From Monocercomonoides exilis PA203 (lineage: Eukaryota; Protista; Preaxostyla), in NCBI GenBank assembly GCA_001643675.2, contig LSRY02000039.1:1-64000 (forward strand): 64,000 bases of DNA. The letters are read 5' to 3'. The position numbers and the translations under genes are program-made. Below, piece after piece: positions 1 through 33,449 of this stretch. A model generated the notes under the pieces. That model saw only the letters and a program-made list of their open reading frames with translations. It did no database searches and was not told where the DNA came from. How positions within the stretch are numbered: position 1 is the stretch's first letter; every line of letters begins with the position of its first letter.

Positions 1-689
1 ATGTTAGGGTTTCAAACCCAAATTAACTTGTTGGGGTTGAATTATGTTGCATAAAATGCTCAATTAAAAAATATAAAATAATTTCACACTAAACAAAAAA
101 AAAAAGAAAAAAATTAAATAAAATAATAAAATAAAATAAAAAAATAAAATAAAAAAATAAAATAAAAAATAAAATAAAAAAATAAAATAAAAAAATAAAA
201 TAAAAATAAAGCTCTATTCAAATTGTGGACAAGTTAAATTGAATCTATTCAAAGTATATTTGAGTGCCTACTAGTTAAATTTCAATTATCAATCATTTTA
301 TTGAGATTGTTGTTGAATATAATTGATTTCAAAAATTTAGTTCAAAACTATATTTGCAGAGAAATAATAATTTGATTCATTCCAAAATAAAAATTTCCAA
401 ACAAAAGAAAGATAAAATCATTTGGTTAATCACGACTTTAAGTAACATTCAGAAACTCGTTTTTTTCGGATTTTTTGTGAAAGAATGATTTAACATCAAA
501 AATAAAACATGCCAAGGGTGAAATTTCCATTTTTAAAAACTTTTTTTTCAATGAAAAAAATTAAAAATTATAATTTTTTTGTGGAAATGAACAATTTGTG
601 TTCAAAAATTTCAAAAATTCAAAGATTCGAAAACAGAAAAATACATTATTATAATCTAAGATGTTTTCATTTCTTCATCAAAAATAGAA

Positions 690-1534
690 ATGTACAAAAT
701 TGTGGATTCCAAAAGAGATATTCATGCAATTCCCAAAATTCATAAGGATAACAATTCAACGTGGGATTGGATTTTTCATTTTTTCAATATCAATGCCCAA
801 AAATGTCCAAAATGTCGGAAATCTATAAAATTGGAGAATGTTGCTAAGATTTGTCGATGGAGATGCAATGACTGCTCTTAATATCTATCCATATTAGGTG
901 GAACTCCTTTTTTCATTGTCGCATTGAATTGAAAACGTTGGTTTTGATACAACTGTATAAACTCATTGGACCACACATTTATCAAACAAGTCTTTGAACA
1001 AACATAAGTGAAAATTCGATTGAGTTTTAAAATTCTGTCACCAGAGCAAGTCTTTTCACTTTGGCTGTTGAAGGATTTCGAAAACTTGGAAGAATTAATT
1101 CAATTGAAGAAAGAGATGAAGCTATTCTTAGAAAAGAAAATTTCACAAAGGGAGAAAGAAAGCTCAAATTTGGATTTATGGAATGATCGAACTGTCAGTG
1201 GATGGAGAAAAAGTCAAATGCATTCTGATAAGAGTGAAAGATCGAAAGAAAAACACTCTATTAAAAATTATTCGAGCGATTGTTATTGAGAGAACAACAA
1301 TCAATATAGATGAATGGAAAGCCTATTAGTTCTTGAAAGAACTCGGATATCCTCAGAAAACAGTGTGCCATAAATGTAACTTCAAAGGTCCAACAACAGG
1401 CATATGTTCTAACATAATTGAAGGAACCTGGAGCTTATTAAGGAAAAGCTTTCCTCCAACAGGAATAAGCGATAATTTCATTGATGATTATCTTTAAAGC
1501 TTCATAAGCTAAAGAGATAAAGAATTGACATCTG
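690..1534 (+). pseudogene. Decayed Merlin/IS1595-family transposase, 5' and catalytic part, interrupted by element C
   Basis: Across frames: KCPKC..WRCNDC, DEAILRKRKFHKGR, WIYGMIE, INIDEWKAY, TVCHKCNF, SNIIEGTWSLL, DDYL. In-frame stops and frameshifts present. Confidence 0.88.
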
Positions 1535-2260
1535 GGTATTTTTTTTGAAAAGTCACAAAATATTAATTGATCTGAAAATCAGATCAAAAATGATCAGAAA
1601 ATATTGATCATTCCGTTCCCATATTATTTCTCAAATTAAATCATGTTTTGTGTTTTTTCTGTCTCTTTCAAAAATATTTTTAAAAATTGTTTATATATGA
1701 TGAATATTTTTAACTTTATTATAACATTCACTTTTAGTTTATATTGTTTTCGTGTTGCTTGAATCTACGAATTGATATGTTTCTATTTCTTGATTTTCAT
1801 TTCATTGGTGATATTTTTCGTTAAAATCTTTTGAATTCTGTTAAATTATATAATGCTTTTAATTGCAAGAAAATAAATAAGAAAAAATAGTTCGTTTTGG
1901 TAATTTTTTCTTGATATTTTTGATTATTGAAATATTTTTGTTTCATACGCATAGCATTCAAATCACATTCAAATAAACGTGCAAGAAAGAAAAAGATTCA
2001 GATGTTGAATTGAAAAAATGAAATAAACAAACAATTTATTTTTCGAAAAGCACTTATTCTGTAAACAAGAAAAAGAACAAGTTAATCATTTTGAGGAACA
2101 AGTTATGAATGAAAATCCTTGCTGTTTTGATTATTTATCCTTCTTATTTTCATATATTTTTCATTTCATTTTGAATCCTTTGCGTGAAGACATCCAGTTT
2201 TGTACTTTTCAATCACTTGAGAAAAGGTTTGCAATTCTAACTGATCAGTATCTCTTGTCA

Positions 2261-5200
2261 CATGAAGATGTCATCTTTGTGCAGTTGTTGGAGCTTCCAG
2301 CAGGGGTGATGGGGTATCTGAAAAATCTTCTTGTTGCTGGTTCCGTGCAGCAGTCGTCTTTTCGCTCAAGTCCTTTGTCTTTTTTGTCTTCTTCAACTGG
2401 AGCATCACGCCGATCAACTTAACCTTTCAGGAGGTGGAAAAGCGAAGAGGAGAAGGTTGAAGGGCATAAGCCCATCATCATCCTCATTTGTATCTACAGT
2501 TGATCCTTCGGAGGCATCGGCGGTAGCTGTGTTTTACACGTCATTAGCAGCGATGGACAGCATCGAAAGACGGCTGCGGATTGTGATGCCAGAATAACTT
2601 GGGCATATGTTCTGCACATGTCGCTGTCGCTGAAGATGCTGTGGGAACATGCTGTCATGTGGCTTGCTGTGAGGTTCGTGGACATTTTGAACATACGCAA
2701 TGAAAAGCTTTCGGCGATGCTTTTTGTTCCGCTGGTGGCTCCACTTCAGTCGCTTGCAATGTCTGTGGGAAAGAAGTTGGGGAGAAAGCGGATATTATCG
2801 GTGGCAGATATGAATGAGTTATTGTCGATTAACGATCAATTTTTTCCCTTCGCTGAAGATATGGCAATTGCAGTTGTTGAGGTGTGTGGAGTGAAACTGG
2901 ACGATAAAATGACGGGAAGATGTGCAGCAATGTTTGAAAAGGGGAAGAGCTGAAGAACAAGAAGGAAGACTTAAAGAGGATGAAGGCGAATGCGGTGTAG
3001 AAGCTTAGCAAGACGGACGGGAAGTACGAGGGGCATGTTGTAAAGCTGGGGATGGAGAAGGAGGGGCTGGGACGGCAGATCCGGGAGCTGAAGGAGCAGC
3101 ACGAGGAGGTGAAGCAGGAGATGGAAAAGCTGTACTCGGAGTTCCACATGCTGCTGCAGAAGATCCGGGACGATGAGCGTATCTCGAAGCGGACGAGCGG
3201 GCTGTCGGAGCAGTTGCAGGAGAAGTACAAGATCATCCGGATGCTGTAGAGGAAGATTCTGGAGCTGAGTAAGGAGCACAACACAAAGGTGAAGGAAGTG
3301 AAGGAGCAGCTGTTGGTGATGAATGAGAATGTGGAGTTGACTGATGTAGTGATTGAGAAGGTTAAGAAGAAGCAGATGCAGGAGAGTGTGATGGTGAGTG
3401 TGGATGACAAGCGGACCACAGTTGTTTTGGTGGTAACTCTAGCTATGCCTTCTTCGTTGGCCTCAGCGGAAAGAGAGATGATTCTGTTTTCTTCTTCGCA
3501 GATTCTGCCTTCTGGGTTTTGTGAAAACACCCATGAGAAGCTTGAAGCAACCGTCAAAATTGCCGTGTTTCAAAGCTATTACCAAACTTGAACAGGAAGG
3601 TGGTTGCAGTGAAAGTCGGGAGCGGGATGAGTGTTGTGGGAAGAAGACAACGGTGGGGAGGATGAGGTGGAAGTTAAGGAACGAGACCTGGAATCAGAGA
3701 AAGATATGAAAAGAAAGGTTCTGTCGAAAGTGCAGGAAAAGACGATACACATGTAGAAGGCGTTGTTCAATAGATGACTGAGAAGCTGCAGACGGAGTTT
3801 GCGCAATAGAAGTGGGAGCAGAAGAAAATTAATGAGAAACATGAAGAGACAGATGAGTAGCTGACTGAAAAAGCGAAGAAGCTGAAAGAGAAGATGGAAT
3901 GAGGGAACTTTTATGGAAGAAGGAAGGTTCGCAGGAGGAAAATGTTGCAGGTTCAGTGCCTTTGGTGGAGTCCACTCCTATGGGGCTGATGACAAGCACA
4001 GAATTTGAATCGACGGAACATGTGGCGAACGAAACGGCGTATGAGCTTTTAATACCGATCACTTTACAGTCGTTCGTGCAGATGAAGTGTTTGTTGAAGC
4101 CGCAGAAAATAGGGCTGCAGCCGTCGTTGGTGTGGAAGCTGACGTTGATTCTGGGGATATTCGGAGACAAGATCGCAACAGACTTGGGAGAGGGCAGTGC
4201 TGTGTTGGCTAGAGTGGTGGTTCCGAGGCAGTGGTTTTGGGATTTTGTATTCATGTGGCTGAGGGTGAAGCATGCAGCGCAGAAGAAGAGCGAGGCAGCT
4301 ATATTAAGGATGATCTTCGTTGTGAAGCTGTTTCCAAATGACTTTGCGGATGTGTTGTTGCTAGGGAAGTTTGTGCGGGAGGAGAGCAAAGGAGACAAGT
4401 TGTGGTTTTCATGACAACTGCAGAGTGCTATTTGATAGTTTTCAGTTGAAGCCACTTGCAGAAGAGAGCTTGATCTTCCTGATGACTTTGGACAGGATGT
4501 TTCGGAAGTGAATCAATTCAGTGGTTAAAGAGTCTTCGGAGAAGAAAATTGAGATGTTGTTTTTGGGGAGTTTGAGGGATTTTATTCGGAGAAGGGAGAG
4601 GCAGACTCGTCTGTGTTTCTGGGGTGTCTGTTAAATAACACCTGAGCAGAAGAAAAGATGAAAAAAGGTGATAAAGGCGCTGCACGATTCAATATATAGC
4701 TGCGATCCATTGACTTTTTCATCATCATCTTCACACAAAGCTTGGTGAGGGATCATGTATTCGAGGCAGGAGTCTCTTTCGTGTGAGTGCATTCCGCAGA
4801 TACCATACGCGCTGTTGCTGCGGATCTTTCGGGATGTGTACATGTTGTCAAAAGGCCGTTTGCCATCATTTGTTTCGGTGCTAGAGGCGTGTCATCACAA
4901 TTACTTCTTCACACTGTTCCTGAAGAATCAGGATATATTTAATTCCTTCGAAATTTGAGCATATCTGTATCAATCTGAGAAAAGTACGGTAAAGAAGGCA
5001 GTTAGCCTGCATTCTACTCTGTTGAAGATGGCTCTTAATGGCCAGGCGCTGGTGATTTCGAGACATCAACAGGGGCAAGGGCAGGGGCGGTAGTGGAGGT
5101 GGTTCAGAAACGGCAGATGGAGTCAACGCAGTGGGCTATGCGGAAGAAAGAAGGGCAGCTGGCACTGTTGTGGATGGATGGGTTGGTTGTGGAGTTGGCG

Positions 5201-5300
5201 GAACTGCAGATGAAAAGAACGAGGTGGAAAAGGTGATCAGTTTTGGGCTGCTGCTATATGATTGGCAGTGTGTGGAGCTGTGTCACAAGGCAATGGAACG
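2261..5300 (+). pseudogene. GC-richer decayed gene of unknown family with coiled-coil segment (element C cargo 1)
   Basis: Sharp GC rise. Long reading frame broken by stops and frameshifts (…LEHHADQLNLSGGGKAKRR…; MEKEGLGRQIRELKEQHEEVKQEMEK…; SVLEACHHNYFF). Boundaries approximate. Confidence 0.55.
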
Positions 5301-5344
5301 GCAGAGGGAGAGAGGAGGAGTCAATGTATTGTCATGTGTCATCA

Positions 5345-5520
5345 TCTTCCTTTTCCTTCTTCTTTTCTCTCCTTCTCTCCTCCTTCTCCTCCTCCTTCTC
5401 CTTCTCCTTCTCCTTCTTCTCTTCTTTCTTCTCTTCTTTCTTCTCCTTCTTCTTCTCCTTCTTCTTCTCCTTCTTCTTCTCCTTCTTCTCTTCTTCTTCT
5501 TCTTCTTCTTCTTCTTCTTT
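5345..5520 (+). repeat. CTT/CTC pyrimidine microsatellite (mirror ~27888-28066)
   Basis: Directly visible. Unit structure differs between arms. Confidence 0.9.
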
Positions 5521-5937
5521 TATTAATTCTTCCTCTTTTTATTCTCTTTTCCCTTCATTTGAAAAGAAATATGTTCAAAGAAGACAATACGTATCAAGAT
5601 TATTGAAATGCTTGCATCGTACGATAACTACTGTGAAAGAAAATGAAGGTGATAATTAACAGGAAATGGAAGTTGAAAAAAGGATAATTGATGGAATGGA
5701 AGGAAATGCAGGAAAAAAATACAATTTATTTCTCAAAGAATAAGCAAAAATTAGAATCGATATGATTTGAAGAAGAGGAAGAATAAGAAAAAGAAGAAGA
5801 AAACTTATGCGATGAGAATGGCAAAGCCGATGAAAATGTGGATGGAGAAATTAAATGATCTATCTCCAAATGCACACTCAAAGGCTTTTTCACTCGAAAC
5901 CTGTTTGTGTTGTGCTGAAGAAGCAAAAGCAAAAGCA

Positions 5938-6319
5938 GAAGAAGAAGAAGAAGAAGAAGAAGAAGAAGAAGAAGAAGAAGAAGAAGAAGAAGAAGAAGAA
6001 GAAGAAGAAGAAAAAGAAGAAGAAGAAGAAGAAGAAGAAAAAGAAGAAGAAGAAGAAGAAGAAGAAGAAGAAGAAGAGGAAGAGGAAAAGGAAGAGGAAG
6101 AGGAAGAGGAAAAGGAAGAGGAAGAGGAAGAGGAAGAGGAAGAGGAAGAGGAAGAGGAAGAGGAAGAGGAAGAGGAAGAGGAAGAGGAAGAGGAAGAGGA
6201 AGAGGAAGAGGAAGAGGAAGAGGAAGAGGAAGAAGAAGAAGAAGAGGAAGAGGAAGAAGAAGAAGAAGAAGAAGAAGAAGAAGAAGAAGAAGAAGAAGAA
6301 GATGATGATGATGATGATG
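5938..6319 (+). repeat. (GAA)n/(GAAGAG)n/(GAT)n microsatellite (mirror ~27113-27470, 24 bp shorter)
   Basis: Directly visible. The overlapping poly-E ORFs are 186 aa versus 178 aa in the two arms. Confidence 0.95.
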
Positions 6320-6389
6320 AAACATAACAATACATATGCTTTTTCTACATCTTCATCTGTCAATTTATCGCCTTGCGAAATGCATCACA

Positions 6390-8110
6390 CGCTGCCATCC
6401 GCAAGTGGCAGCCCAAATCATATCGAATCTTCCACTTAATTCCAATTCATCTGCAGCCCTTATAGCTCCATTAGCAGTTGTTCTTTCCGGATAAATCCCT
6501 TCATCCTTGTTCCTCCTCATCTGCAGCTCCACAAGCTTCGCCAGCAGACGCACCATTCGGAACATTGCCTACAACACATTTTTTCTTCTCCACCTGCGAT
6601 TTCACAGCATCCACTCTCAGCTTCAGTCCAACCTCAATTTCCCTGTACAACTTCACCTACGATACCTCCGAAAATTTCTTGTGCTCCGTTTCATCAAGCG
6701 CCAAGTCTCTGTCTTATCAAATCGCTCTGAAATCAAACAGCATCTGAAGCACTCTCCGATCAACCACATTGTATTCATCCGGTTGGCTCAAGCGCATCGT
6801 GTAGAAGTTGTAACGATGACTCACATTTCCAGCACCGAATCGAATGATGGAAGAAGGAACACAGACAACTTGAATGCATCTAAATAGTTCCGTAACAACT
6901 GCTCCGGCTGTGTTGGCAGCTTAGACACAGAAAGAAAAGAATCCATTTTATCGTTCACATTGCCTCAACAAGCCCCGCCAAATGACGATGAGAATTTTTC
7001 TGTGATGAAATCGATGGATAGAATCAACATATCACATCAGATTCCATCTTCATCGTCTTTTTCCGATAAGCTGCTCCTCCGCTTCAATTATTCAGTTGTA
7101 ACACTAGAAACATTGTTGCATCTGCGTTTCCATCATCGGGTTCGAAATGCTCTCGTGTGTTGTATCTTATGCAGAAGCATGAAGAACTCTGCACGCCTCT
7201 TCTCTATCTACTTCTTGGTCTTTTTTTGCTAATTTTATTCTTCAACACCTCTCTCCCTCCATATTCTTCTCCCTTTTCTTCTCCCTCTTTGTCTCCCATG
7301 TCTCCTTCCTCTCCTCTGCGCGCTCATCCAGCACCGCCAGCGCAATCACTGCTGGAGACAGAACCACATCCTTCATCCTCAGCCCCATCACATACAGCTT
7401 CTTCTCCACAATCCCCCCCACTTCACACACTGCAATCCCTCGCCCCATCACTTCGTCATCCAGCTTCACCACCACACGCCTCGACTGCGGCGATCGCGAC
7501 ACAAGCCGCGCTATCGCCGACGGAAGCAGCGACGGGTGAAACAGATCGTTGATTAACTGTTACTCATTCAAACTTCCACATCAAATATCCGCTTGCTCCC
7601 CGACTTCGTTCCCACCGACGCTGCAAGAGCATGAAGCTCCACCACCAGCGAAACAGAAAGCATCGCCGAAATCGCCACATCGTACGCACACAACACCTCC
7701 ATACAGCACTCTCCGCCAAGCCACAACATATCCATGCAGCGTCTGTTGCTCCCTCAGTTACAACTTATTTTGATTTTCATACACCCCAGCCACCTCTCGA
7801 TGCAGTCCATATCTCCAGCCGACTTGTTTGACGCCGCCTCCGCCTAGGTATCCGAAGGGTCAATCGCAGGCGCTGATAATAATGGCTGCTCATTCTCTGA
7901 AGATTTCTTCTCTTCGCCCCTACGCCTCCGGAATGGCGAAGTTGATCGGAGTTATGCTCCAGTTAAAGATCTTAAAAAGTTCTGAGAGAAGAGACGACTG
8001 CTATGCTTCCCCGTTCACAAGAAGCTTGATGGGACATATCCCATCACGTCAGCCAGAATTTCAACCAGAAGCAGAAACAGCATCCACTTTCGTATATGAA
8101 TGGTCGACCA
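6390..8110 (-). pseudogene. Decayed paralog of cargo 1 in convergent orientation (element C cargo 2)
   Basis: Minus strand reads ctttaactggagcataactccgatcaacttcgccattccggaggcg, versus 2391+ cttcaactggagcatcacgccgatcaacttaacctttcaggaggtg. Also tttcggcgatgctttctgtttcgctggtgg versus 2709+ tttcggcgatgctttttgttccgctggtgg. Confidence 0.6.
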
Positions 8111-8766
8111 GCTAAGAATACCTGATTTTTTCGTGCAATTTGAAAAGATAGTAGCAGGATATTTTTCCACAATGTATCAATATTAAATGGAAGGGAGAAG
8201 GAAAAGGCACATTCTGAAATGAAAGAAACTTGTTTGATACAAACTGTTTGAATTTAAATATTAGAAGAGATTGCATTTTTGAGTTTGTTGCAAATGGAGA
8301 TTTATTTTGAAAATTCACATATCTAACTTCGATTTTTAACAATAATATTAATAATTGCTCGATGTTAACAGCTTTTAAAATATCTTATAATAACAATGAG
8401 TACAGTATCGATAAAATTTTCTTATTTTATAATTTCTCATAAAAATACTAAAATTAAAGCAAGTTAAAATCTATTTGTCTTTCAACATAGGAAAATATTT
8501 AAAAAGAGGTCTCCATTCGAAAAATCAAAACGTTTATTCGAACAATTGAAATGAAAAGAAAGAAATATGAACAAATTTTTCTGTTGTTTCAAAAAACAAG
8601 AAAAAGAATATTTTTTAACATAAATATGATTAGACAAAGAAAGTGATATATGAAATTTGTTTTATTGAAACGAAATTTTTGGGGATATGTGTGATAAAAC
8701 CAAATAGAAAAAAACAAAGCAATAAATGATGGGAACGGAAAGATCAACATTTTCTGATCATTTGTG

Positions 8767-9637
8767 GGCATAGGTGTATTTAAAGCACATTCCCAATCCT
8801 TGGATATTCTTTAAAACATTGTGATAAATAAAAAGTATATTTAATTATAAAACATTTGTATGGACTGGAATTTTGAAATTCTTTTTGATCCTTGAGAAAA
8901 AACAATTTTTGCAAATCACCCATAAACACTGGTATTTTTCTTATAAAAATGATAAAATAAGATAATTTTAAAATAATAAGCAGCTGTGAGGTCATTTATT
9001 ATTATATACTCTTATTTTATTTATGATTTTTCAAAAAATAAAACATTTTAAAAAATTAATTAAAAAATTTAAATATTTTGATCAATCCCACAATTATATT
9101 TTTAATGTCCAAAAAATTAGAATTTGCTTTCTTTCATCAAGAATTGAACCCTCGTTTGCGAACATACAACAAATCATATATATAAATATAGATTTAAAGT
9201 GTGTGATGAATTATTATCAATATATCATTCAAATCTTTATGAATTTTGTTTATGATTTTTAAGATGAAAATTTTTGTGCAGTTTGAGGATGATTATATTA
9301 CGCAATGATGATCATGAATAAAGAAGCTTTGTTGATGCCATGAAAGTGTGAATTTCATATAAATTAACTTATTTAAAGAATGTTTTAACGATTTTCATTA
9401 TTTTTTTTATTTATTTTTTTACTGAATCAATGTTGAATGTTAAATGCAAGAAGATATTTACAGAAGCAACAACTACTGCACAAATATGAAAGATGGAATG
9501 CGTTTTGCAGCAAATAAAAGAGGGTTTCTTGATTTCGCATTTGTGGGGATGAAATCCAATGCAAATACAGCAAAAGTGGGAAACGATATTTTCATTGAAT
9601 GTTACAACATCACATGCAATATTAACATGTGCAGAAT
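8767..9637 (+). repeat. Left TIR of element B (871 bp)
   Basis: Reverse complement of 17281-18151. Mirrored ORFs have a constant coordinate sum of 26918 (no indels). Confidence 0.95.
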
Positions 9638-12370: not shown

Positions 12371-13055
12371 GGAGAGAGTGTGGTGGTGGAGTTGAGAAAG
12401 ATGTGGAAACTACACACCGAATGAGGAAGTGAGTGACATGATGATGGATGTGAATCTGGTGTTATTCAAGAGCATTCAATCGGACACAATTCTTTTGATG
12501 ATGATTCGCGATAATAGTTATCACAGAGACTTAAAGCGAGAATGCATTACTCGAGTATTTTCAAATGCATCGAGTGCGGATGGAAAAATGGAGAGATGAA
12601 AAAGTTCTTTCCAAACAATTCTTTAGGAGAAAGACCAGAATGATAATGCGAAACAAAAGAAAATATGATTCTAATGTATATTTATATGTTTGGAAAAAAT
12701 GAGAATGCAGTGATGAGAAAACAATTGAAACAAAACGAAACAGAAAACAAATTCAAACTTTTTAATAAATGAACGAAATTATCACACATGATTAATCTTT
12801 TGAAATTATGCATTCATTATTTTTATAAGAAAAAACAAAGCTGTGATTATATTTGTTTTTGATTATTTATTTGAGTTTTTTTTGTATATTGATTATGAAA
12901 AAAATTATGCAAATTATTCAAAAAAAATATATGTTTTTTATGTCAAAAAGAAGTTAAAAATCAAATTCCAAATGTGTGTTTTTTTTTAAATTTTCCATTA
13001 TAAATATCATAATTTTTAAATTTTTGATCATCTGCAGAACAATTATATCAAATAC

Positions 13056-17190: not shown

Positions 17191-17280
17191 TGTATGTTGA
17201 ATAATATGCTTTGATATTTGAACATCAAATATGTATTAAATTAGTTGAAAATGTTTATATGATGAACTCAAGGAATTTTG

Positions 17281-18151: not shown

Positions 18152-18211
18152 CATTTGTGATCTGATTTTCAGATCAATTAATATTTTGTGACTTTTCAAA
18201 AAAAAAATACC

Positions 18212-21796: not shown

Positions 21797-22241
21797 AATA
21801 TTTCAAATAGAGTGTCTGAAAAAAGATTTATTGAATTATTCAAGTTTTGATCTTCATATGTGAAAAAATAGAAATAAAAAGACAGATAAGTGAAGTGAAA
21901 TCAACAAATAGAATACTGAAGGCACTTCGAAATAAAACAAAAAAAAATTGCGAAAAATTTAAAATCTCAAGATCAAATAAAGATTTAAAAAATATTTGGA
22001 ATCGAATTTCAAAAATAATTAATAAATTATGCTCTGCAAAGATCAACAAACAATTTGCAAAATATTACACATTCAAAGTTCAACTTTGGTTCAAAAACAC
22101 TTATACAACCGAAATTTCAAAAAACATTTGACATTCAATATAATAAGCAAATAATTTCGTCGATACCAATATTTCTTACATTTTCGAAATAATTTTCATT
22201 GATCCTTCTAATTCTTTCGCTTCCATTTTCTTCTCAGCCAC

Positions 22242-23085
22242 TTCTGCTGCTTCCTTCATCATTTCAGCCACTTCTGCTGCTTCCTTCATCATTTCAGCTG
22301 CTTCTATTGCTTCATTCTTTTCCTCCTTTTTCCTATCCATCTTTATTCTTCCAATTTATGCATTTTATCAGCTCTTACTATTCTCTTGTCGCATCTCTCG
22401 CAAAATGTAGCTTATCCGCAATCACGTTTTCCAAACTTTTGTCACTGTAAACTCGGTTTATTAAAAATACCCAAGCAGAATGACAAGCAAGTCGTGTCAG
22501 ATTGTTGAATTCTTGATGACGCTTTATAATTTCTATAATTTCACTCAAATACAGTTCCTTTTTGATTGGCTGATAAAAAATTAAAATAAAAATTAAAAAA
22601 AATCAAAAGAAAATAGAAAATTTCAAACGTAACGGAAAGTATTGATCAAAGTCAACAATGCCATTTCCACTTCTTTTTGTGTTTCCTCGCTTTCCTCTTT
22701 CTTCGCTGCAACTTTCAGAAGGCAACGGACACATATTGAAGCAAATTCTCTTGAAATATCCTCATGAAGCAAAAGAAAGCATTCACAAAGTCCAACAAGA
22801 AGATTTTCATTCTTTTCATCTTTTTTTCTCTCTTCTTCTTCAATGATCATTTTCTGAAATCGATCTCTCAAAAAGATTCATCAAAAGAATATAATAAAGT
22901 CATTTTCAACACTTTGTAATATCCCATGTCCTTCAGCAATCAGCAGCTTTCTCCAACGTAATTTTCTTTCGTCAAACATTTTGTGCATTTTGTCGAACAA
23001 TTCTTCTGTAAAAAACAGGAATTAATTCTTCTTAATGCGTTTCTTCGATTAACTCTTTCGTTTGTTCAAAATTCGGTATCATCTT
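22242..23085 (-). pseudogene. Mirror copy of the 19740-20583 host-gene fragment
   Basis: ORF 22623-22871 is identical to part of 19885-20202. Confidence 0.7.
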
Positions 23086-25321
23086 AAATACAGCGCAACA
23101 CTAAAGTTAAAAATATCGTTTTTTAAATAAAAAAAAACGTCATATCGAGTATTTAGATTTCAAAATGAATAAAAATTAATAATATTCAATAAGTTATCAC
23201 ACTTCCGTGATGCCAATTTCTTCACCTTTTTGTTTCGAGCAAAAGTGAAAGTGATTAAGTGAACGATCGAAATTAAGCAACTAAAAATAAAATATTTTTA
23301 ATAAAGATTGATAAAAACAAATAACCAACAAAAATTAACATACAGACAGCAGAGTTCATTAATTATTGTAAGCTATACAAAGAGATACGGAAATATAAAT
23401 ATAAAATTGATGATCACATCCATTATTTTTTTATTTTTAACATTTTTAAAACTGAACATGACAGACGAAGTTTCGCCAAATAATAATAATTTTAAAATAA
23501 TTAGAAATAGTGAGCTTTTCATTTACTATTTGAATTTTTGCTCAACTCGTCTGTCAACTAGATTATATCTCGCCATTTTTTCACTTTCCAGAATCTCAAC
23601 AATTTCAGCTCTTTTTTCCAATCGTTTGTGCATGTGCGTGCAATTATTTTGATAAGTGACTTTTTGATCAAACCTTATTTTTTATTTTTGTCCGGTATTT
23701 CATACACAATCTATATTTAATCATTTGGATAATAATCAAACTCAATAATAAAGATTCAGTTAAAACCTGATATAATCGCATCGAATTCAATCACAATCGG
23801 TAATAATCTCATTTAACCATGCACCGACATTTTAGTCCAGTTTTTTATTCATTTTCCATCTCATTTGATCGCAATACAAAATATATGTGTGTGATTATTT
23901 TTGAAGTCAAATTTATGTGTTTTAAAATTCCGATCAAAAAAATGCACTTGAATTCAAATTTTTTTCACACACGAAAGTGAAAAGATCTGTTTTCAATGTC
24001 TTCATCTGTATTAAAGAAAAATCAATAATTTTCTAATAATATGAAATCGTTTTTGCATATGATTTCAACAGGAATTTTCAATGTCATACATCCTTTGAAA
24101 AAACAACATCTCGAAAAAAGTTATGTTTTAAAAAAAATCACCCATATAATCGCATTTTGTTTATTAAAGGTTCTTTTTTCATTGTAAAACGACTTTTTGA
24201 TCAAAAAACTCAATTTTTTGATTTTTCTAAAATGAGCTCAAATAAGTATTAATAATGCATATTAATGATAAAGAATATTTTCACAAGTGAAAAATGTGTA
24301 TTTGTATGGAATATCCAAAAATAAAAAAATCGACTCAAAATAAATTATTTCAAAAATTAATTTTTTTATTTTTCCGTGTTAAACAGCGTCGTATATTATC
24401 ACAATCGGATATAGTCACAAAAAGTTGTGTAAAAACCGATATGATTATTTCCGATTTTGATTGTATCTTCATTTTCAATTTCAGTTTCTTCATCATTTTT
24501 TTCCTTTTCCATTTCAACCAAATATTCTTCTTTATCAATTTCGAACAAATCATTTTCCTCCTTTTCTTATATTTTAAATTTTGAAAATATTCAAAAAAAA
24601 TTTTTTTCAGATGGGTATTTTTTTTTTGAAAAGTCACAAAATATTAATTGATCTGAAAATCAGATCACAAATGATCAGAAAATGTTGATCTTTCCGTTCC
24701 CATCATTTATTGCTTTGTTTTTTTCTATTTGGTTTTATCACACATATCCCCAAAAATTTCGTTTCAATAAAACAAATTTCATATATCACTTTCTTTGTCT
24801 AATCATATTTATGTTAAAAAATATTCTTTTTCTTGTTTTTTGAAACAACAGAAAAATTTGTTCATATTTCTTTCTTTTCATTTCAATTGTTCGAATAAAC
24901 GTTTTGATTTTTCGAATGGAGACCTCTTTTTAAATATTTTCCTATGTTGAAAGACAAATAGATTTTAACTTGCTTTAATTTTAGTATTTTTATGAGAAAT
25001 TATAAAATAAGAAAATTTTATCGATACTGTACTCATTGTTATTATAAGATATTTTAAAAGCTGTTAACATCGAGCAATTATTAATATTATTGTTAAAAAT
25101 CGAAGTTAGATATGTGAATTTTCAAAATAAATCTCCATTTGCAACAAACTCAAAAATGCAATCTCTTCTAATATTTAAATTCAAACAGTTTGTATCAAAC
25201 AAGTTTCTTTCATTTCAGAATGTGCCTTTTCCTTCTCCCTTCCATTTAATATTGATACATTGTGGAAAAATATCCTGCTACTATCTTTTCAAATTGCACG
25301 AAAAAATCAGGTATTCTTAGC

Positions 25322-27042
25322 TGGTCGACCATTCATATACGAAAGTGGATGCTGTTTCTGCTTCTGGTTGAAATTCTGGCTGACGTGATGGGATATGTCC
25401 CATCAAGCTTCTTGTGAACGGGGAAGCATAGCAGTCGTCTCTTCTCTCAGAACTTTTTAAGATCTTTAACTGGAGCATAACTCCGATCAACTTCGCCATT
25501 CCGGAGGCGTAGGGGCGAAGAGAAGAAATCTTCAGAGAATGAGCAGCCATTATTATCAGCGCCTGCGATTGACCCTTCGGATACCTAGGCGGAGGCGGCG
25601 TCAAACAAGTCGGCTGGAGATATGGACTGCATCGAGAGGTGGCTGGGGTGTATGAAAATCAAAATAAGTTGTAACTGAGGGAGCAACAGACGCTGCATGG
25701 ATATGTTGTGGCTTGGCGGAGAGTGCTGTATGGAGGTGTTGTGTGCGTACGATGTGGCGATTTCGGCGATGCTTTCTGTTTCGCTGGTGGTGGAGCTTCA
25801 TGCTCTTGCAGCGTCGGTGGGAACGAAGTCGGGGAGCAAGCGGATATTTGATGTGGAAGTTTGAATGAGTAACAGTTAATCAACGATCTGTTTCACCCGT
25901 CGCTGCTTCCGTCGGCGATAGCGCGGCTTGTGTCGCGATCGCCGCAGTCGAGGCGTGTGGTGGTGAAGCTGGATGACGAAGTGATGGGGCGAGGGATTGC
26001 AGTGTGTGAAGTGGGGGGGATTGTGGAGAAGAAGCTGTATGTGATGGGGCTGAGGATGAAGGATGTGGTTCTGTCTCCAGCAGTGATTGCGCTGGCGGTG
26101 CTGGATGAGCGCGCAGAGGAGAGGAAGGAGACATGGGAGACAAAGAGGGAGAAGAAAAGGGAGAAGAATATGGAGGGAGAGAGGTGTTGAAGAATAAAAT
26201 TAGCAAAAAAAGACCAAGAAGTAGATAGAGAAGAGGCGTGCAGAGTTCTTCATGCTTCTGCATAAGATACAACACACGAGAGCATTTCGAACCCGATGAT
26301 GGAAACGCAGATGCAACAATGTTTCTAGTGTTACAACTGAATAATTGAAGCGGAGGAGCAGCTTATCGGAAAAAGACGATGAAGATGGAATCTGATGTGA
26401 TATGTTGATTCTATCCATCGATTTCATCACAGAAAAATTCTCATCGTCATTTGGCGGGGCTTGTTGAGGCAATGTGAACGATAAAATGGATTCTTTTCTT
26501 TCTGTGTCTAAGCTGCCAACACAGCCGGAGCAGTTGTTACGGAACTATTTAGATGCATTCAAGTTGTCTGTGTTCCTTCTTCCATCATTCGATTCGGTGC
26601 TGGAAATGTGAGTCATCGTTACAACTTCTACACGATGCGCTTGAGCCAACCGGATGAATACAATGTGGTTGATCGGAGAGTGCTTCAGATGCTGTTTGAT
26701 TTCAGAGCGATTTGATAAGACAGAGACTTGGCGCTTGATGAAACGGAGCACAAGAAATTTTCGGAGGTATCGTAGGTGAAGTTGTACAGGGAAATTGAGG
26801 TTGGACTGAAGCTGAGAGTGGATGCTGTGAAATCGCAGGTGGAGAAGAAAAAATGTGTTGTAGGCAATGTTCCGAATGGTGCGTCTGCTGGCGAAGCTTG
26901 TGGAGCTGCAGATGAGGAGGAACAAGGATGAAGGGATTTATCCGGAAAGAACAACTGCTAATGGAGCTATAAGGGCTGCAGATGAATTGGAATTAAGTGG
27001 AAGATTCGATATGATTTGGGCTGCCACTTGCGGATGGCAGCG
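25322..27042 (+). pseudogene. Mirror copy of element C cargo 2
   Basis: Reverse complement of 6390-8110. Confidence 0.6.
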
Positions 27043-28114
27043 TGTGATGCATTTCGCAAGGCGATAAATTGACAGATGAAGATGTAGAAAAAGCATATGT
27101 ATTGTTATGTTTCATCATCATCATCATCATCATCTTCTTCTTCTTCTTCTTCTTCTTCTTCTTCTTCTTCTTCTTCTTCTTCCTCTTCCTCTTCTTCTTC
27201 TTCTTCCTCTTCCTCTTCCTCTTCCTCTTCCTCTTCCTCTTCTTCTTCTTCTTCCTCTTCCTCTTCCTCTTCCTCTTCCTCTTCCTCTTCCTCTTCCTCT
27301 TCCTCTTCCTCTTCCTCTTCCTCTTCCTCTTCCTCTTCCTCTTCCTCTTCCTCTTCCTCTTCCTCTTCCTCTTCCTTTTCCTCTTCCTCTTCCTCTTCCT
27401 TTTCCTCTTCCTCTTCTTCTTCTTCTTCTTCTTCTTCTTCTTCTTCTTCTTCTTCTTCTTCTTCTTCTTCTGCTTTTGCTTTTGCTTCTTCAGCACAACA
27501 CAAACAGGTTTCGAGTGAAAAAGCCTTTGAGTGTGCATTTGGAGATAGATCATTTAATTTCTCCATCCACATTTTCATCGGCTTTGCCATTCTCATCGCA
27601 TAAGTTTTCTTCTTCTTTTTCTTATTCTTCCTCTTCTTCAAATCATATCGATTCTAATTTTTGCTTATTCTTTGAGAAATAAATTGTATTTTTTTCCTGC
27701 ATTTCCTTCCATTCCATCAATTATCCTTTTTTCAACTTCCATTTCCTGTTAATTATCACCTTCATTTTCTTTCACAGTAGTTATCGTACGATGCAAGCAT
27801 TTCAATAATCTTGATACGTATTGTCTTCTTTGAACATATTTCTTTTCAAATGAAGGGAAAAGAGAATAAAAAGAGGAAGAATTAATAAAAGAAGAAGAAG
27901 AAGAAGAAGAAGAAGAAGAGAAGAAGGAGAAGAAGAAGGAGAAGAAGAAGGAGAAGAAGAAGGAGAAGAAAGAAAGAAGAGAAGAAAGAAGAGAAGAAGG
28001 AGAAGGAGAAGGAGAAGGAGGAGGAGAAGGAGGAGGAGAAGGAGGAGGAAAAGAAGAAGGAAAAGGAAGATGATGACACATGACAATACATTGACTCCTC
28101 CTCTCTCCCTCTGC

Positions 28115-31100
28115 CGTTCCATTGCCTTGTGACACAGCTCCACACACTGCCAATCATATAGCAGCAGCCCAAAACTGATCACCTTTTCCACCTCGTTCTT
28201 TTCATCTGCAGTTCCACCAACTCCACAACCAACCCATCCATCCACAACAGTGCCAGCTGCCCTTCTTTCTTCCGCATAGCCCACTGCGTTGACTCCATCT
28301 GCCGTTTCTGAACCACCTCCACTACCGCCCCTGCCCTTGCCCCTGTTGATGTCTCGAAATCACCAGCGCCTGGCCATTAAGAGCCATCTTCAACAGAGTA
28401 GAATGCAGGCTAACTGCCTTCTTTACCGTACTTTTCTCAGATTGATACAGATATGCTCAAATTTCGAAGGAATTAAATATATCCTGATTCTTCAGGAACA
28501 GTGTGAAGAAGTAATTGTGATGACACGCCTCTAGCACCGAAACAAATGATGGCAAACGGCCTTTTGACAACATGTACACATCCCGAAAGATCCGCAGCAA
28601 CAGCGCGTATGGTATCTGCGGAATGCACTCACACGAAAGAGACTCCTGCCTCGAATACATGATCCCTCACCAAGCTTTGTGTGAAGATGATGATGAAAAA
28701 GTCAATGGATCGCAGCTATATATTGAATCGTGCAGCGCCTTTATCACCTTTTTTCATCTTTTCTTCTGCTCAGGTGTTATTTAACAGACACCCCAGAAAC
28801 ACAGACGAGTCTGCCTCTCCCTTCTCCGAATAAAATCCCTCAAACTCCCCAAAAACAACATCTCAATTTTCTTCTCCGAAGACTCTTTAACCACTGAATT
28901 GATTCACTTCCGAAACATCCTGTCCAAAGTCATCAGGAAGATCAAGCTCTCTTCTGCAAGTGGCTTCAACTGAAAACTATCAAATAGCACTCTGCAGTTG
29001 TCATGAAAACCACAACTTGTCTCCTTTGCTCTCCTCCCGCACAAACTTCCCTAGCAACAACACATCCGCAAAGTCATTTGGAAACAGCTTCACAACGAAG
29101 ATCATCCTTAATATAGCTGCCTCGCTCTTCTTCTGCGCTGCATGCTTCACCCTCAGCCACATGAATACAAAATCCCAAAACCACTGCCTCGGAACCACCA
29201 CTCTAGCCAACACAGCACTGCCCTCTCCCAAGTCTGTTGCGATCTTGTCTCCGAATATCCCCAGAATCAACGTCAGCTTCCACACCAACGACGGCTGCAG
29301 CCCTATTTTCTGCGGCTTCAACAAACACTTCATCTGCACGAACGACTGTAAAGTGATCGGTATTAAAAGCTCATACGCCGTTTCGTTCGCCACATGTTCC
29401 GTCGATTCAAATTCTGTGCTTGTCATCAGCCCCATAGGAGTGGACTCCACCAAAGGCACTGAACCTGCAACATTTTCCTCCTGCGAACCTTCCTTCTTCC
29501 ATAAAAGTTCCCTCATTCCATCTTCTCTTTCAGCTTCTTCGCTTTTTCAGTCAGCTACTCATCTGTCTCTTCATGTTTCTCATTAATTTTCTTCTGCTCC
29601 CACTTCTATTGCGCAAACTCCGTCTGCAGCTTCTCAGTCATCTATTGAACAACGCCTTCTACATGTGTATCGTCTTTTCCTGCACTTTCGACAGAACCTT
29701 TCTTTTCATATCTTTCTCTGATTCCAGGTCTCGTTCCTTAACTTCCACCTCATCCTCCCCCACCGTTGTCTTCTTCCCACAACACTCATCCCGCTCCCGA
29801 CTTTCACTGCAACCACCTTCCTGTTCAAGTTTGGTAATAGCTTTGAAACACGGCAATTTTTGACGGTTGCTTCAAGCTTCTCATGGGTGTTTTCACAAAA
29901 CCCAGAAGGCAGAATCTGCGAAGAAGAAAACAGAATCATCTCTCTTTCCGCTGAGGCCAACGAAGAAGGCATAGCTAGAGTTACCACCAAAACAACTGTG
30001 GTCCGCTTGTCATCCACACTCACCATCACACTCTCCTGCATCTGCTTCTTCTTAACCTTCTCAATCACTACATCAGTCAACTCCACATTCTCATTCATCA
30101 CCAACAGCTGCTCCTTCACTTCCTTCACCTTTGTGTTGTGCTCCTTACTCAGCTCCAGAATCTTCCTCTACAGCATCCGGATGATCTTGTACTTCTCCTG
30201 CAACTGCTCCGACAGCCCGCTCGTCCGCTTCGAGATACGCTCATCGTCCCGGATCTTCTGCAGCAGCATGTGGAACTCCGAGTACAGCTTTTCCATCTCC
30301 TGCTTCACCTCCTCGTGCTGCTCCTTCAGCTCCCGGATCTGCCGTCCCAGCCCCTCCTTCTCCATCCCCAGCTTTACAACATGCCCCTCGTACTTCCCGT
30401 CCGTCTTGCTAAGCTTCTACACCGCATTCGCCTTCATCCTCTTTAAGTCTTCCTTCTTGTTCTTCAGCTCTTCCCCTTTTCAAACATTGCTGCACATCTT
30501 CCCGTCATTTTATCGTCCAGTTTCACTCCACACACCTCAACAACTGCAATTGCCATATCTTCAGCGAAGGGAAAAAATTGATCGTTAATCGACAATAACT
30601 CATTCATATCTGCCACCGATAATATCCGCTTTCTCCCCAACTTCTTTCCCACAGACATTGCAAGCGACTGAAGTGGAGCCACCAGCGGAACAAAAAGCAT
30701 CGCCGAAAGCTTTTCATTGCGTATGTTCAAAATGTCCACGAACCTCACAGCAAGCCACATGACAGCATGTTCCCACAGCATCTTCAGCGACAGCGACATG
30801 TGCAGAACATATGCCCAAGTTATTCTGGCATCACAATCCGCAGCCGTCTTTCGATGCTGTCCATCGCTGCTAATGACGTGTAAAACACAGCTACCGCCGA
30901 TGCCTCCGAAGGATCAACTGTAGATACAAATGAGGATGATGATGGGCTTATGCCCTTCAACCTTCTCCTCTTCGCTTTTCCACCTCCTGAAAGGTTAAGT
31001 TGATCGGCGTGATGCTCCAGTTGAAGAAGACAAAAAAGACAAAGGACTTGAGCGAAAAGACGACTGCTGCACGGAACCAGCAACAAGAAGATTTTTCAGA

Positions 31101-31156
31101 TACCCCATCACCCCTGCTGGAAGCTCCAACAACTGCACAAAGATGACATCTTCATG
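28115..31156 (-). pseudogene. Mirror copy of element C cargo 1
   Basis: Reverse complement of 2261-5300. Confidence 0.55.
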
Positions 31157-31883
31157 TGACAAGAGATACTGATCAGTTAGAATTGCAAACCTTTTCTCAA
31201 GTGATTGAAAAGTACAAAACTGGATGTCTTCACGCAAAGGATTCAAAATGAAATGAAAAATATATGAAAATAAGAAGGATAAATAATCAAAACAGCAAGG
31301 ATTTTCATTCATAACTTGTTCCTCAAAATGATTAACTTGTTCTTTTTCTTGTTTACAGAATAAGTGCTTTTCGAAAAATAAATTGTTTGTTTATTTCATT
31401 TTTTCAATTCAACATCTGAATCTTTTTCTTTCTTGCACGTTTATTTGAATGTGATTTGAATGCTATGCGTATGAAACAAAAATATTTCAATAATCAAAAA
31501 TATCAAGAAAAAATTACCAAAACGAACTATTTTTTCTTATTTATTTTCTTGCAATTAAAAGCATTATATAATTTAACAGAATTCAAAAGATTTTAACGAA
31601 AAATATCACCAATGAAATGAAAATCAAGAAATAGAAACATATCAATTCGTAGATTCAAGCAACACGAAAACAATATAAACTAAAAGTGAATGTTATAATA
31701 AAGTTAAAAATATTCATCATATATAAACAATTTTTAAAAATATTTTTGAAAGAGACAGAAAAAACACAAAACATGATTTAATTTGAGAAATAATATGGGA
31801 ACGGAATGATCAATATTTTCTGATCATTTTTGATCTGATTTTCAGATCAATTAATATTTTGTGACTTTTCAAAAAAAAATACC

Positions 31884-32732
31884 CAGATGTCAATTCTTTA
31901 TCTCTTTAGCTTATGAAGCTTTAAAGATAATCATCAATGAAATTATCGCTTATTCCTGTTGGAGGAAAGCTTTTCCTTAATAAGCTCCAGGTTCCTTCAA
32001 TTATGTTAGAACATATGCCTGTTGTTGGACCTTTGAAGTTACATTTATGGCACACTGTTTTCTGAGGATATCCGAGTTCTTTCAAGAACTAATAGGCTTT
32101 CCATTCATCTATATTGATTGTTGTTCTCTCAATAACAATCGCTCGAATAATTTTTAATAGAGTGTTTTTCTTTCGATCTTTCACTCTTATCAGAATGCAT
32201 TTGACTTTTTCTCCATCCACTGACAGTTCGATCATTCCATAAATCCAAATTTGAGCTTTCTTTCTCCCTTTGTGAAATTTTCTTTTTCTAAGAATAGCTT
32301 CATCTCTTTCTTCAATTGAATTAATTCTTCCAAGTTTTCGAAATCCTTCAACAGCCAAAGTGAAAAGACTTGCTCTGGTGACAGAATTTTAAAACTCAAT
32401 CGAATTTTCACTTATGTTTGTTCAAAGACTTGTTTGATAAATGTGTGGTCCAATGAGTTTATACAGTTGTATCAAAACCAACGTTTTCAATTCAATGCGA
32501 CAATGAAAAAAAGGAGTTCCACCTAATATGGATAGATATTAAGAGCAGTCATTGCATCTCCATCGACAAATCTTAGCAACATTCTCCAATTTTATAGATT
32601 TCCGACATTTTGGACATTTTTTGGGCATTGATATTGAAAAAAATGAAAAATCCAATCCCACGTTGAATTGTTATCCTTATGAATTTTGGGAATTGCATGA
32701 ATATCTCTTTTGGAATCCACAATTTTGTACAT
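31884..32732 (-). pseudogene. Mirror copy of the decayed Merlin transposase (tail at ~24399-24613)
   Basis: ORF 32089-32358 reads ERDEAILRKRKFHKGRKKAQIWIYGMIE...IDEWKAY. Reverse complement of 690-1534. Confidence 0.88.
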
Positions 32733-33449
32733 TTCTATTTTTTGATGAAGAAATGAAAACATCTTAGATTATAATAATGTATTTTTCTGTTTTTCGAATC
32801 TTTGAATTTTGAAATTTTTGAACACAAATTGTTCATTTCCACAAAAAAATTATAATTTTTAATTTTTTTCATTGAAAAAAAAAGTTTTTTAAAAATGGAA
32901 ATTTCACCCTTGGCATGTTTTATTTTTTGATGTTAAATCATTCTTTCACAAAAAATCCGAAAAAAAAACGAGTTTCTGAATGTTACTTAAAGTCGTGATT
33001 AACCAAATGATTTTATCTTTCTTTTGTTTGGAAATTTTTATTTTGGAATGAATCAAATTATTATTTCTCTGCAAATATAGTTTTGAACTAAATTTTTGAA
33101 ATCAATTATATTCAACAACAATCTCAATAAAATGATTGATAATTGAAATTTAACTAGTAGGCACTCAAACATACTTTGAATAGATTCAATTTAACTTGTC
33201 CACAATTTGAATAGAGCTTTATTTTTATTTTATTTTTTTATTTTATTTTTTTATTTTATTTTTTTATTTTATTTTATTATTTTATTTAATTTTTTCTTTT
33301 TTTTTTGTTTAGTGTGAAATTATTTTATATTTTTTAATTGAGCATTTTATGCAACATAATTCAACCCCAACAAGTTAATTTGGGTTGAAACCCTAACATT
33401 GAAACTGTGATCAATAGAAATAAAGCGAACAAATAAAAACCCTTAAAAA

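Follow-up and report, generated by a model that had tools for sequence, protein, structure and literature searches.

How did an intact Merlin transposase come to stand at the centre of a long palindrome, and is this palindrome itself a mobile element or a piece of duplicated host DNA? The locus lies at the start of contig LSRY02000039.1 (C35) of Monocercomonoides exilis PA203. We analyzed the first 64,000 nucleotides of this contig (C35:1–64000), referred to below as the window. An earlier note, made from the sequence of the window, had read the structure as one giant Merlin with terminal inverted repeats (TIRs) of about 11 kb, enlarged by absorbed cargo.

Layout and outer limits of the palindrome

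Self-comparison of the window showed the following layout:

20584–22241: single-copy spacer of 1,658 bp, the loop of the palindrome
1–8766: outer part of the left arm within C35, mirroring 24666–33399; truncated by the start of C35 and resuming at C67:3669–18253
18152–19249: inner flank of the left arm, mirroring 23575–24673
23575–47988: right arm beyond the central transposon, an inverted duplicate of 24.4 kb made up of host sequence and old repeats

Positions 1–8766 were the reverse complement of 24666–33399 with 99.0% identity, the differences being mostly gaps, and positions 18152–20583 were the reverse complement of 22242–24673 with 99.9% identity. The near-identical inverted arms around the spacer, described in the earlier note, were thus confirmed, and the observation could be extended. 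The arm length of about 11.2 kb given there, with arm ends at 1 and 33399, had to be revised. The window starts with the first base of C35; hence base 1 and its mirror position 33399 mark the start of a contig and not the end of an arm. The left arm continues on contig C67, where positions 2–3668 are the reverse complement of C35:1–3673 with no substitutions. C67 has the left-arm variant, and not the right-arm one, at one SNP and at an indel of 24 bp in a microsatellite. Beyond the overlap, C67 extends the left arm to the equivalent of window position 48007 with 99.2–99.6% identity and then diverges.

The outer arm boundary was placed at ~47988 (±15 bp) in the window and at ~C67:18253 on the other side. 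The palindrome measures ~62.6 kb in total, with arms of 25.7 kb each and the 1,658-bp spacer. Neither a GG/Merlin terminus nor a target site duplication (TSD), which the earlier note had expected to be 8–9 bp long, is present at these outer ends (~47988 and C67:~18253). A genome search at ≥99% identity recovered arm DNA on C35 and the overlapping C67 only, i.e., at one locus.

The central Merlin and its copies elsewhere in the genome

The element at the centre of the palindrome is a Merlin/IS1595 transposon of ordinary size (4.3 kb) with unusually long TIRs. It comprises the following features:

19250–23574, minus strand: mobile unit, an autonomous Merlin/IS1595 of 4,325 bp with the 29-bp terminus GGCGAGATATAATCTAGTTGACAGACGAG, without a TSD at this locus
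19250–20583: left TIR, 1,334 bp, no substitutions relative to the right TIR
22242–23574: right TIR, 1,333 bp, delimited by window self-comparison
20508–20583: 30-bp tandem array at the inner end of the left TIR
19885–20202: ORF inside the left TIR, a fragment of a gene from a large family
20909–21796, minus strand: intact DDE transposase of 295 aa, the only long ORF of the spacer

The transposase matched Pfam family DDE_Tnp_IS1595 (PF12762) over residues 140–276 with an E-value of 2.1e-19. Alignment with 10 relatives showed no variation at its triad D143/D209/E246, which indicates an intact DDE. The N-terminal Zn_Tnp_IS1595 domain gave no Pfam match at E ≤ 0.01; the CxxC motif and the later Cys positions align with those of the relatives. 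An exact-protein look-up returned no record of an identical protein, and the closest relatives found by a wide protein search had at most 38% identity. The observation that the spacer holds one gene, an intact IS1595/Merlin transposase, was confirmed. Terminal 5′-GG is present at both ends of the element (the terminus starts GGCGAGATATAA). The flanks of the window copy, GAAAAAAT and ATTTTTTC, are reverse complements of each other and not a direct repeat.

The 29-bp terminus had 28 matches in the genome, all with 5′-GG and mostly arranged in facing pairs. Perfect 8-bp TSDs were found in six of nine copies (C17, C8, C18, C36, C9, and C35:244071–269122), and the TSDs of these sister copies sit exactly at the termini equivalent to 19250 and 23574. 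Similarity of the C23 and C36 copies to the window was confined to ~19250–23574 (window 23475–23511 and its mirror 19314–19350 were masked when further loci were compared later). TIR length was 1,425 bp in C23, ~1.3 kb in C36, and ~3 kb in C9. The long inverted repeats that the earlier note had proposed to look for around other copies of this transposase were not found; those copies have TIRs of ~1.1–1.4 kb, lose similarity at 19250/23574, and possess 8-bp TSDs of their own. These comparisons show that the limits of the mobile unit are 19250 and 23574. At other loci, the termini of the core Merlin bound units of 25 and 33.7 kb that are flanked by TSDs; the TIRs of such large units are just 0.5–3 kb long, and at least one unit has been enlarged by a nested element.

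TIR pairs were 99–100% identical within one copy and differed by 8–15% between copies. Merlin is defined by terminal 5′-GG TIRs and an 8–9-bp TSD, and a TIR range of 24–462 bp (Feschotte, 2004) is quoted for it, both as cited in Lopes et al. (2021, PMC8101967). Merlin elements of M. exilis were already reported in the latter work, from a fragmented 454 assembly and with TIRs of 23–29 bp. The TIR of the core element (1,334 bp) exceeds the quoted range, which is descriptive and no exclusion criterion. The element resembles Merlin/IS1595 in its DDE_Tnp_IS1595 transposase with intact triad, its 5′-GG termini, and the 8-bp TSDs of its sisters. It differs from described Merlins in that M. exilis TIRs reach 0.5–3 kb and those of the core element hold the gene-family fragment and the 30-bp tandem array; the family represented by this fragment has at least 150 members. 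TIRs of kilobase length whose two members stay identical in any one copy characterize this family and have not been described for Merlin before; the TIRs of 0.5–3 kb that Merlins of M. exilis can carry evolve in concert, copy by copy. Of the idea that TIRs had grown to kilobases with cargo, the part that stands concerns these 1.33-kb repeats with their gene-family fragment; the ~11-kb arms are not TIRs.

Differences between the arms and the chromosome that carries them

The arms contain the following further features:

8767–18151: element B, a Merlin of a second family, 9,385 bp, in the left arm only, with perfect 871-bp TIRs and the terminus GGCATAGG
13134–14157: IS1595-type transposase of element B, split by a frame change
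24666–24673: unfilled insertion site in the right arm, corresponding to element B
35284–47405, plus strand: giant receptor-like kinase gene, one per arm (3,323 + 722 aa)
36265–36684, plus strand: divergent patch of 420 bp, wholly different between the arms and in frame in both
27111–27491: hexanucleotide microsatellite, mirror copy at 5917–6321, varying between the arms in length and sequence
31753–32616, minus strand: fragment of a dead Merlin transposase from another family, mirrored at 1132–1494

The largest and the sole big difference between the arms is the insertion of element B, flanked by the 8-bp TSD CATTTGTG at 8759–8766 and 18152–18159. The earlier note had recognized a TSD-flanked insertion and had regarded element B as a smaller long-TIR Merlin, and both points agree with the 871-bp TIRs and the 8-bp TSD found here. 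Its other observations on the arms, namely dead transposase, unequal microsatellite lengths, and substitutions at ~250 and ~5199 (right-arm counterparts 33170 and 28216), were reproduced as well. The receptor-kinase copy in the window is broken in two by a poly-A tract near 45212; the C67 copy is a single ORF of 3,948 aa. The 420-bp patch probably represents a repeat unit of the receptor gene that underwent conversion. An inverted pair of 189 bp (33413–33601 and 48065–48253) was also examined as a possible boundary of an element of 14.8 kb; it showed neither a clear TSD nor a clear terminus.

When the patch and the microsatellite are excluded, the arms differ by ~13–14 substitutions in 25 kb. 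The substitutions cluster outward, with about 7 in the outer 3.7 kb vs. 3–6 in the inner 21 kb. Among 39 inter-arm indels, 26 are homopolymer-length changes, an error type of ONT sequencing, and the very low divergence of the arms could partly stem from polishing with ambiguously mapping reads. The arms are physically distinct DNA molecules, because one of them carries the TSD-flanked 9.4-kb insertion opposite an empty site and because the 420-bp patch differs in frame between them. The culture of M. exilis was reported to be clonal and monoploid (PMC6759080). We rejected the possibility that the arms are alleles on the basis of this published monoploidy and of the telomere at each end of the joined chromosome described below.

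A (TTAGGG)n telomere was present at the far end of C35 and at the far end of C67. Because of the 3.67-kb overlap, C67 and C35 would together constitute one telomere-to-telomere chromosome of 1.277 Mb (~1.28 Mb) in which the palindrome is interstitial. This length falls inside the range of 0.86–2.54 Mb of the complete chromosomes in the M. exilis assembly (PMC8767320). The reverse complement of C67 followed by C35 would be the eleventh telomere-to-telomere chromosome and would close a gap of the assembly.

Origin of the palindrome

The structure of the locus is best explained, with a probability that we put at about 0.72, by a fold-back inverted duplication of host DNA mediated by the TIRs of the core Merlin, which would have stayed intact at the symmetry centre. 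A break or a stalled fork would have arisen beside the element, and its two long TIRs would have annealed, whether on a single strand or across sister chromatids. Outward DNA synthesis would then have produced a reversed copy of ~24 kb of the flank on the right, and this copy would have been connected to other DNA of the chromosome, on the C67 side, at a second junction equivalent to ~47988. The original left flank of the Merlin and its TSD would have been lost through this replacement. Afterwards, element B would have entered one arm, microsatellite lengths would have shifted, and one 420-bp patch of the receptor gene would have been replaced. We infer this mechanism and its trigger, as well as the contig join, from the arrangement of the sequences.

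The features expected from a fold-back were seen at the locus: inverted segments with a single-copy spacer, substitution-free 1.33-kb TIRs at the boundary, and a replaced flank. One original flank of the Merlin was replaced, as its present flanks show by being reverse complements and not a direct repeat. Complementarity does not stop at the TIR tips but runs on into the flanking DNA, as predicted if the TIRs annealed and synthesis followed. The original left flank was not recovered when the assembly was searched for the expected TSD beside the terminus; no orphan terminus with this TSD occurs elsewhere in the assembly, and the near-matches belong to other subfamilies only.

Fold-back formation of inverted duplications is recognized in humans by a single-copy spacer with inverted repeats on either side (Hermetz et al., 2014, PMC3907307), and in yeast, inverted repeats anneal near a break (Ramakrishnan et al., 2018, PMC6103520). 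The M. exilis locus shares with these fold-backs the inverted copies, the single-copy spacer of kilobase size, and the inverted sequences exactly at the boundary between spacer and duplication; the original sequence of the far side is likewise lost, and the second junction leads into unrelated DNA. Unlike them, it is seeded by the 1.33-kb TIRs of an intact transposon and not by short or engineered repeats. Its product lies interstitially, has become fixed in a clonal line of a free-living protist, and includes a second copy of an entire 12-kb gene. If this origin is correct, the locus would represent a natural, fixed fold-back duplication seeded by inverted repeats, those of an intact transposon, with a complete duplicated receptor gene as the product.

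The palindrome could also be absent from the cell and result from assembly, either by a head-to-head misjoin made by Canu through the Merlin TIRs or from chimeric fold-back nanopore reads; we regard this as unlikely. Its location at the very beginning of C35, the near identity of the arms, the prevalence of homopolymer-length indels, and the still imperfect polishing of multi-copy regions stated in the assembly paper (PMC8767320) are consistent with such an artefact. However, the read N50 of the ONT assembly, 8.9 kb (PMC8767320), is above the 1.33-kb TIR and the 4.3-kb element; it also exceeds the 6.6-kb span from element B across the Merlin to the empty site, so the 1.3-kb TIR alone should not confuse the assembler. 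Haplotigs are not expected in a monoploid clonal culture (PMC6759080). A template–complement chimera would yield no 1.66-kb spacer, and two separate loci would predict two orphan Merlin flanks, whereas the assembly has none. The joined C67–C35 chromosome is telomeric at both ends, and the differences between the arms, with the 9.4-kb insertion opposite an empty site and the in-frame patch of 420 bp, exceed sequencing error.

A real palindrome might have been formed by another route, such as aberrant sister-chromatid transposition of the Merlin or an older inverted segmental duplication with a remodelled centre. The transposase at the centre is intact, and cuts at the element end could provide the initiating break; the concentration of substitutions in the outer 3.7 kb fits an older duplication homogenized near its centre. 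In maize Ac/Ds, however, sister-chromatid transposition joins the flanks head to head, and the loop is not formed by one intact element. That the Merlin inserted into a palindrome already present is excluded, because the flanks of the window copy mirror each other and no direct TSD is present at 19250/23574. Complementarity that passes seamlessly from the TIRs into the flanking DNA matches TIR annealing and synthesis. Other routes of this kind seem rather improbable. The giant Merlin proposed in the earlier note, mobile as a unit with TIRs of more than 11 kb, draws on the unusual length of TIRs in this genome, on the gene fragments within them, and on the 25- and 33.7-kb TSD-flanked units with the same termini. 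We rejected that reading, which is now very improbable. The arms outside 19250/23574 are unique to one locus, the termini recognized by the transposase lie 24 kb inside them, the apparent end at 33399 mirrors a contig start, and the other large units have TIRs of 0.5–3 kb, at least one having grown by nesting. Short TIRs in other copies and arm ends without a TSD, which the earlier note itself had named as evidence against its proposal, were both found.

Fold-back from TIRs might extend beyond this locus. It is possible, and we suggest it tentatively, that long-TIR Merlins are a distinct kind of Merlin in which frequent pairing of the two ends keeps the TIRs of a copy identical and recurrently seeds large gene-carrying palindromes. 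If true, the TIRs would be a main engine behind the duplication of giant receptor-kinase genes in this monoploid and apparently asexual eukaryote, and the palindromes might act as a repair template within the chromosome.

Galileo of Drosophila, a foldback-like, autonomous cut-and-paste element of the P superfamily, has kilobase-scale TIRs with internal tandem repeats and is associated with chromosomal rearrangement, producing inversions by ectopic recombination between copies. The M. exilis Merlin is similar in its kilobase-scale TIRs with internal tandem repeats and in its tie to a chromosomal rearrangement. It differs in belonging to another transposase superfamily and in that the palindrome is centred on a single copy. 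Palindromes of mammalian sex chromosomes consist of long near-identical gene-bearing arms around a short unique spacer and are homogenized from arm to arm. The M. exilis arms are also near-identical, gene-bearing, and least diverged near the centre. Ongoing arm-to-arm conversion is only suggested here by the ~13 substitutions, a number that polishing may confound. Unlike the mammalian palindromes, that of M. exilis has much smaller arms, is centred on a transposon, and resides in a reportedly monoploid host.

Extent and layout of the palindrome

Comparison of the window with itself bore out the palindrome around a unique spacer that the earlier note had described. Its parts, the elements within it, and the arms as they would run in the chromosome joined from contigs C35 and C67 are listed below (window positions; TIR, terminal inverted repeat; TSD, target-site duplication).

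Parts of the palindrome
1-8766: outer left arm present in the contig; reverse complement of 24666-33399, 99.0% identity (self-comparison)
8767-18151: element B, a Merlin of a second family, 9,385 bp, interrupting the left arm; perfect 871-bp TIRs, GG terminus, IS1595-type transposase, 8-bp TSD CATTTGTG
18152-20583: inner left arm; reverse complement of 22242-24673, 99.9% identity (self-comparison)
19250-23574: Merlin mobile unit, 4,325 bp; TIRs of 1,334 and 1,333 bp
20584-22241: unique spacer, 1,658 bp (self-comparison)
22242 to ~47988: right arm in the joined chromosome, 25.7 kb
Left arm in the joined chromosome: 25.8 kb, plus the 9.4-kb insertion of element B

The TSD-flanked insertion noticed earlier as a difference between the arms was confirmed as element B; its unfilled target is present in the right arm at 24666-24673. 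The arm length of ~11 kb, with an end at 33399, was not upheld. A genome search placed the start of the window at base 1 of contig C35, so base 1 is the end of the contig and not of the left arm, and the apparent right-arm end at 33399, which mirrors this cut, is merely its reflection. With the right arm as a query, matches of at least 99% were obtained only to the left arm and to the start of contig C67. C67:2-3668 and C35:1-3673 are reverse complements without any substitution (a head-to-head overlap of 3.67 kb), and C67:2-18271 matches window 29742-48007 with 99.2-99.6% identity. Past the equivalent of 48007 the two contigs are unrelated over at least 16-22 kb. In the overlap, C67 and the left arm agree with each other against the right arm in a SNP (T, instead of the C at 33170 of the right arm) and in a microsatellite indel of 24 bp, so they represent the same physical copy. 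The arms are really ~25.7 kb long, the left one continuing onto C67. Extension reached ~47988, and at this outer boundary no GG terminus or TSD was found. A 189-bp inverted pair (91% identity) lies at 33413-33601, inside the right arm, and at 48065-48253, ~77 bp past the arm boundary; it showed no clear terminus or TSD.

Arrays of (TTAGGG)n were found at the far ends of both C35 (1,025,343 bp) and C67 (255,432 bp) (loci L057 and L058). The reverse complement of C67 followed by C35 would make a telomere-to-telomere chromosome of 1.277 Mb, left as two contigs in the published assembly, and its length falls inside the 0.86-2.54 Mb range of the complete chromosomes (PMC8767320). In this joined chromosome the palindrome, ~62.6 kb in total, would be interstitial. 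On both sides it is flanked by ordinary gene-bearing DNA, which includes an F-box/LRR gene towards C67 and, among others, RRM and SH3 genes towards C35.

The central Merlin and its relatives

The earlier note was right that the only gene of the spacer encodes a complete IS1595/Merlin DDE transposase. The sole long ORF (20909-21796, minus strand, 295 aa) matches Pfam PF12762 (E 2e-19), and its residues D143, D209, and E246 were invariant in an alignment with ten relatives. A search of the genome (82,301,135 bp, 101 contigs) with the transposase revealed close copies on C23, C36, C8, C32, and C17, and 20 kb around each of the C23 and C36 copies was compared with the window. The C23 copy is a 4.6-kb element with TIRs of 1,425 bp; the C36 copy has TIRs of ~1.3 kb, one of them broken by a 5.6-kb insertion. 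Their resemblance to the window ends at ~19250 and ~23574, and the arm DNA outside is not common to them. Across the genome, 28 occurrences of the 29-bp terminus GGCGAGATATAATCTAGTTGACAGACGAG were counted, most of them in facing pairs, and pairs with perfect 8-bp TSDs were found on C17, C8, C18, C36, C9, and at C35:244071-269122. The limits of copy similarity, the termini, and the TSDs together define the transposon as 19250-23574. The reading of the whole palindrome as a giant Merlin with ~11-kb TIRs is therefore rejected: the mobile unit is 4,325 bp, arm DNA beyond it is absent from the C23 and C36 copies, and the TIRs of those copies reach only ~1.3-1.4 kb, not the length of the arms. The underlying idea, that Merlin TIRs have grown to kilobases with foreign sequence, holds on the 1-3-kb scale and fails for the arms, whether taken as 11 kb or as the real 25.7 kb.

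Most transposase copies at least 49% identical to that of the window lie between inverted repeats that measure 0.5-1.4 kb or more and are 99-100% identical within a copy, and families at 38% transposase identity have TIRs of 29-35 bp. The latter match the 23-29-bp Merlin TIRs reported for Monocercomonoides exilis from an older fragmented assembly (PMC8101967). Between copies, TIR identity is 91-92% (window vs. C23 and C36) or 85-86% (L008 vs. L011). As the two TIRs of each copy are almost identical and differ by 8-15% from those of other copies, they evolve in concert; this contrast, based on related transposase copies at loci L002-L012, L017, and L019, points to concerted evolution of both ends of each long-TIR Merlin. 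The TIR of the window copy contains a 105-aa ORF (19885-20202, mirrored in the right TIR) without a Pfam match; the ORF is a fragment from a family of at least 150 genes (52-67% identity; open frames of ~170-230 aa). At the inner end of this TIR lies a 30-bp tandem array whose copy number varies.

Two much larger units bear Merlin termini. The unit at C9:346160-379882 (L053-L056; 33.7 kb) has the 29-bp termini, a perfect 8-bp TSD CATTTTCC, and TIRs of ~3 kb with 97% identity. No Merlin transposase was found within it; ORFs of 398 and 1,039 aa have a ubiquitin C-terminal hydrolase (UCH) domain. Two readings fit this unit: a very large non-autonomous Merlin with cargo, or a small Merlin that nesting has enlarged. 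The unit at C35:244071-269122 (L059-L061; 25 kb) has termini with one variant base, a perfect TSD AAGAAAAA, TIRs of 478 bp, and a nested 8.5-kb element with TIRs of 1,264 bp. This nested element and the C9 unit have a 4.2-kb UCH-gene segment in common (84-88% identity). The size of these TSD-flanked units stems at least partly from nesting after insertion.

Origin of the palindrome

The 8 bp outside the termini of the window copy, GAAAAAAT and ATTTTTTC, are mutual reverse complements and not a direct repeat. Such mirrored flanks rule out insertion of the Merlin into an already existing palindrome and indicate that an inverted copy of one flank took the place of the original flank on the opposite side. 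Structurally, this is an inverted duplication whose single-copy spacer is bounded by inverted repeats and whose far-side DNA was lost. Human inverted duplications formed by fold-back carry the same signature, a spacer bounded by inverted repeats and loss of the opposite side (PMC3907307). The palindrome is also consistent with observations in yeast, where resection close to a break exposes inverted repeats, which anneal and, with a spacer of ~1 kb, do so mostly between sister chromatids, giving inverted dimers (PMC6103520). Our best reading, with a probability of about 70%, is that the inverted duplication is real, was seeded by fold-back of the TIRs, and spans the contig break. In this reading the two 1.33-kb Merlin TIRs would anneal to each other. 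Starting at the paired TIR tip, synthesis would proceed outward and copy the right flank, which would explain why complementarity continues without a break past the TIR tips into the flanking DNA, and a second junction at ~47988 would join the copied flank to the C67 side. A transposase cut at the left end is a possible trigger. The locus would be a new natural variant of already known processes, the novelty being that the palindrome turns on a full-length, autonomous Merlin, with the long TIRs of this element itself serving as the seed.

The palindrome could instead be an assembly artefact, either a misjoin of two loci via the TIRs or a template-complement chimeric read. The published PA203 nanopore assembly was made with Canu 1.8 from reads with an N50 of 8.9 kb, followed by Nanopolish and Pilon (ten rounds), and its authors mention poorer polishing in multi-copy regions (PMC8767320). 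Indels between the arms number 39, and 26 of them are homopolymer differences of 1-2 bp, a type of nanopore error; the low number of substitutions (~14 in 25 kb, patch and microsatellite excluded) may be partly an effect of polishing. However, the arms differ physically, by the 9.4-kb TSD-flanked insertion, a 420-bp patch that has diverged throughout but is in frame in both, and microsatellite lengths. A misjoin via TIRs predicts orphan Merlin ends with other flanks, and none were found in the assembly; both the element (4.3 kb) and the span from element B to its empty site (6.6 kb) are shorter than the read N50; and a 1.66-kb spacer is not expected from a template-complement chimeric read. 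The two arm versions are not alleles, since the culture is clonal and inferred to be monoploid, with 0.04 SNP per kb (PMC6759080). On this comparison of arms and flanks, we favour a real palindrome and disfavour an artefact. Arm substitutions concentrate in the outermost 3.7 kb (~7 vs. 3-6 in the inner 21 kb); small as these numbers are, the duplication may be not brand new and kept uniform near its centre.

A receptor gene and a repeat in the arms

Each arm has a copy of a giant receptor-like kinase gene with a C-terminal kinase domain (window 35284-47405 and C67:5823-17669). It is a single 3,948-aa ORF in C67 and is split into 3,323 and 722 aa at a poly-A run near 45212 in C35, where an error in the nanopore consensus, and not a real frameshift, may account for the split. 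The 420-bp patch (36265-36684) lies in this gene and has 179 positions differing between the arms; it is probably a repeat unit that was converted by a paralogue. A 400-bp MITE-like near-palindrome at 34524-34923 (194-bp arms, 12-bp loop) has many copies throughout the genome, with 80-90% identity and in both orientations.
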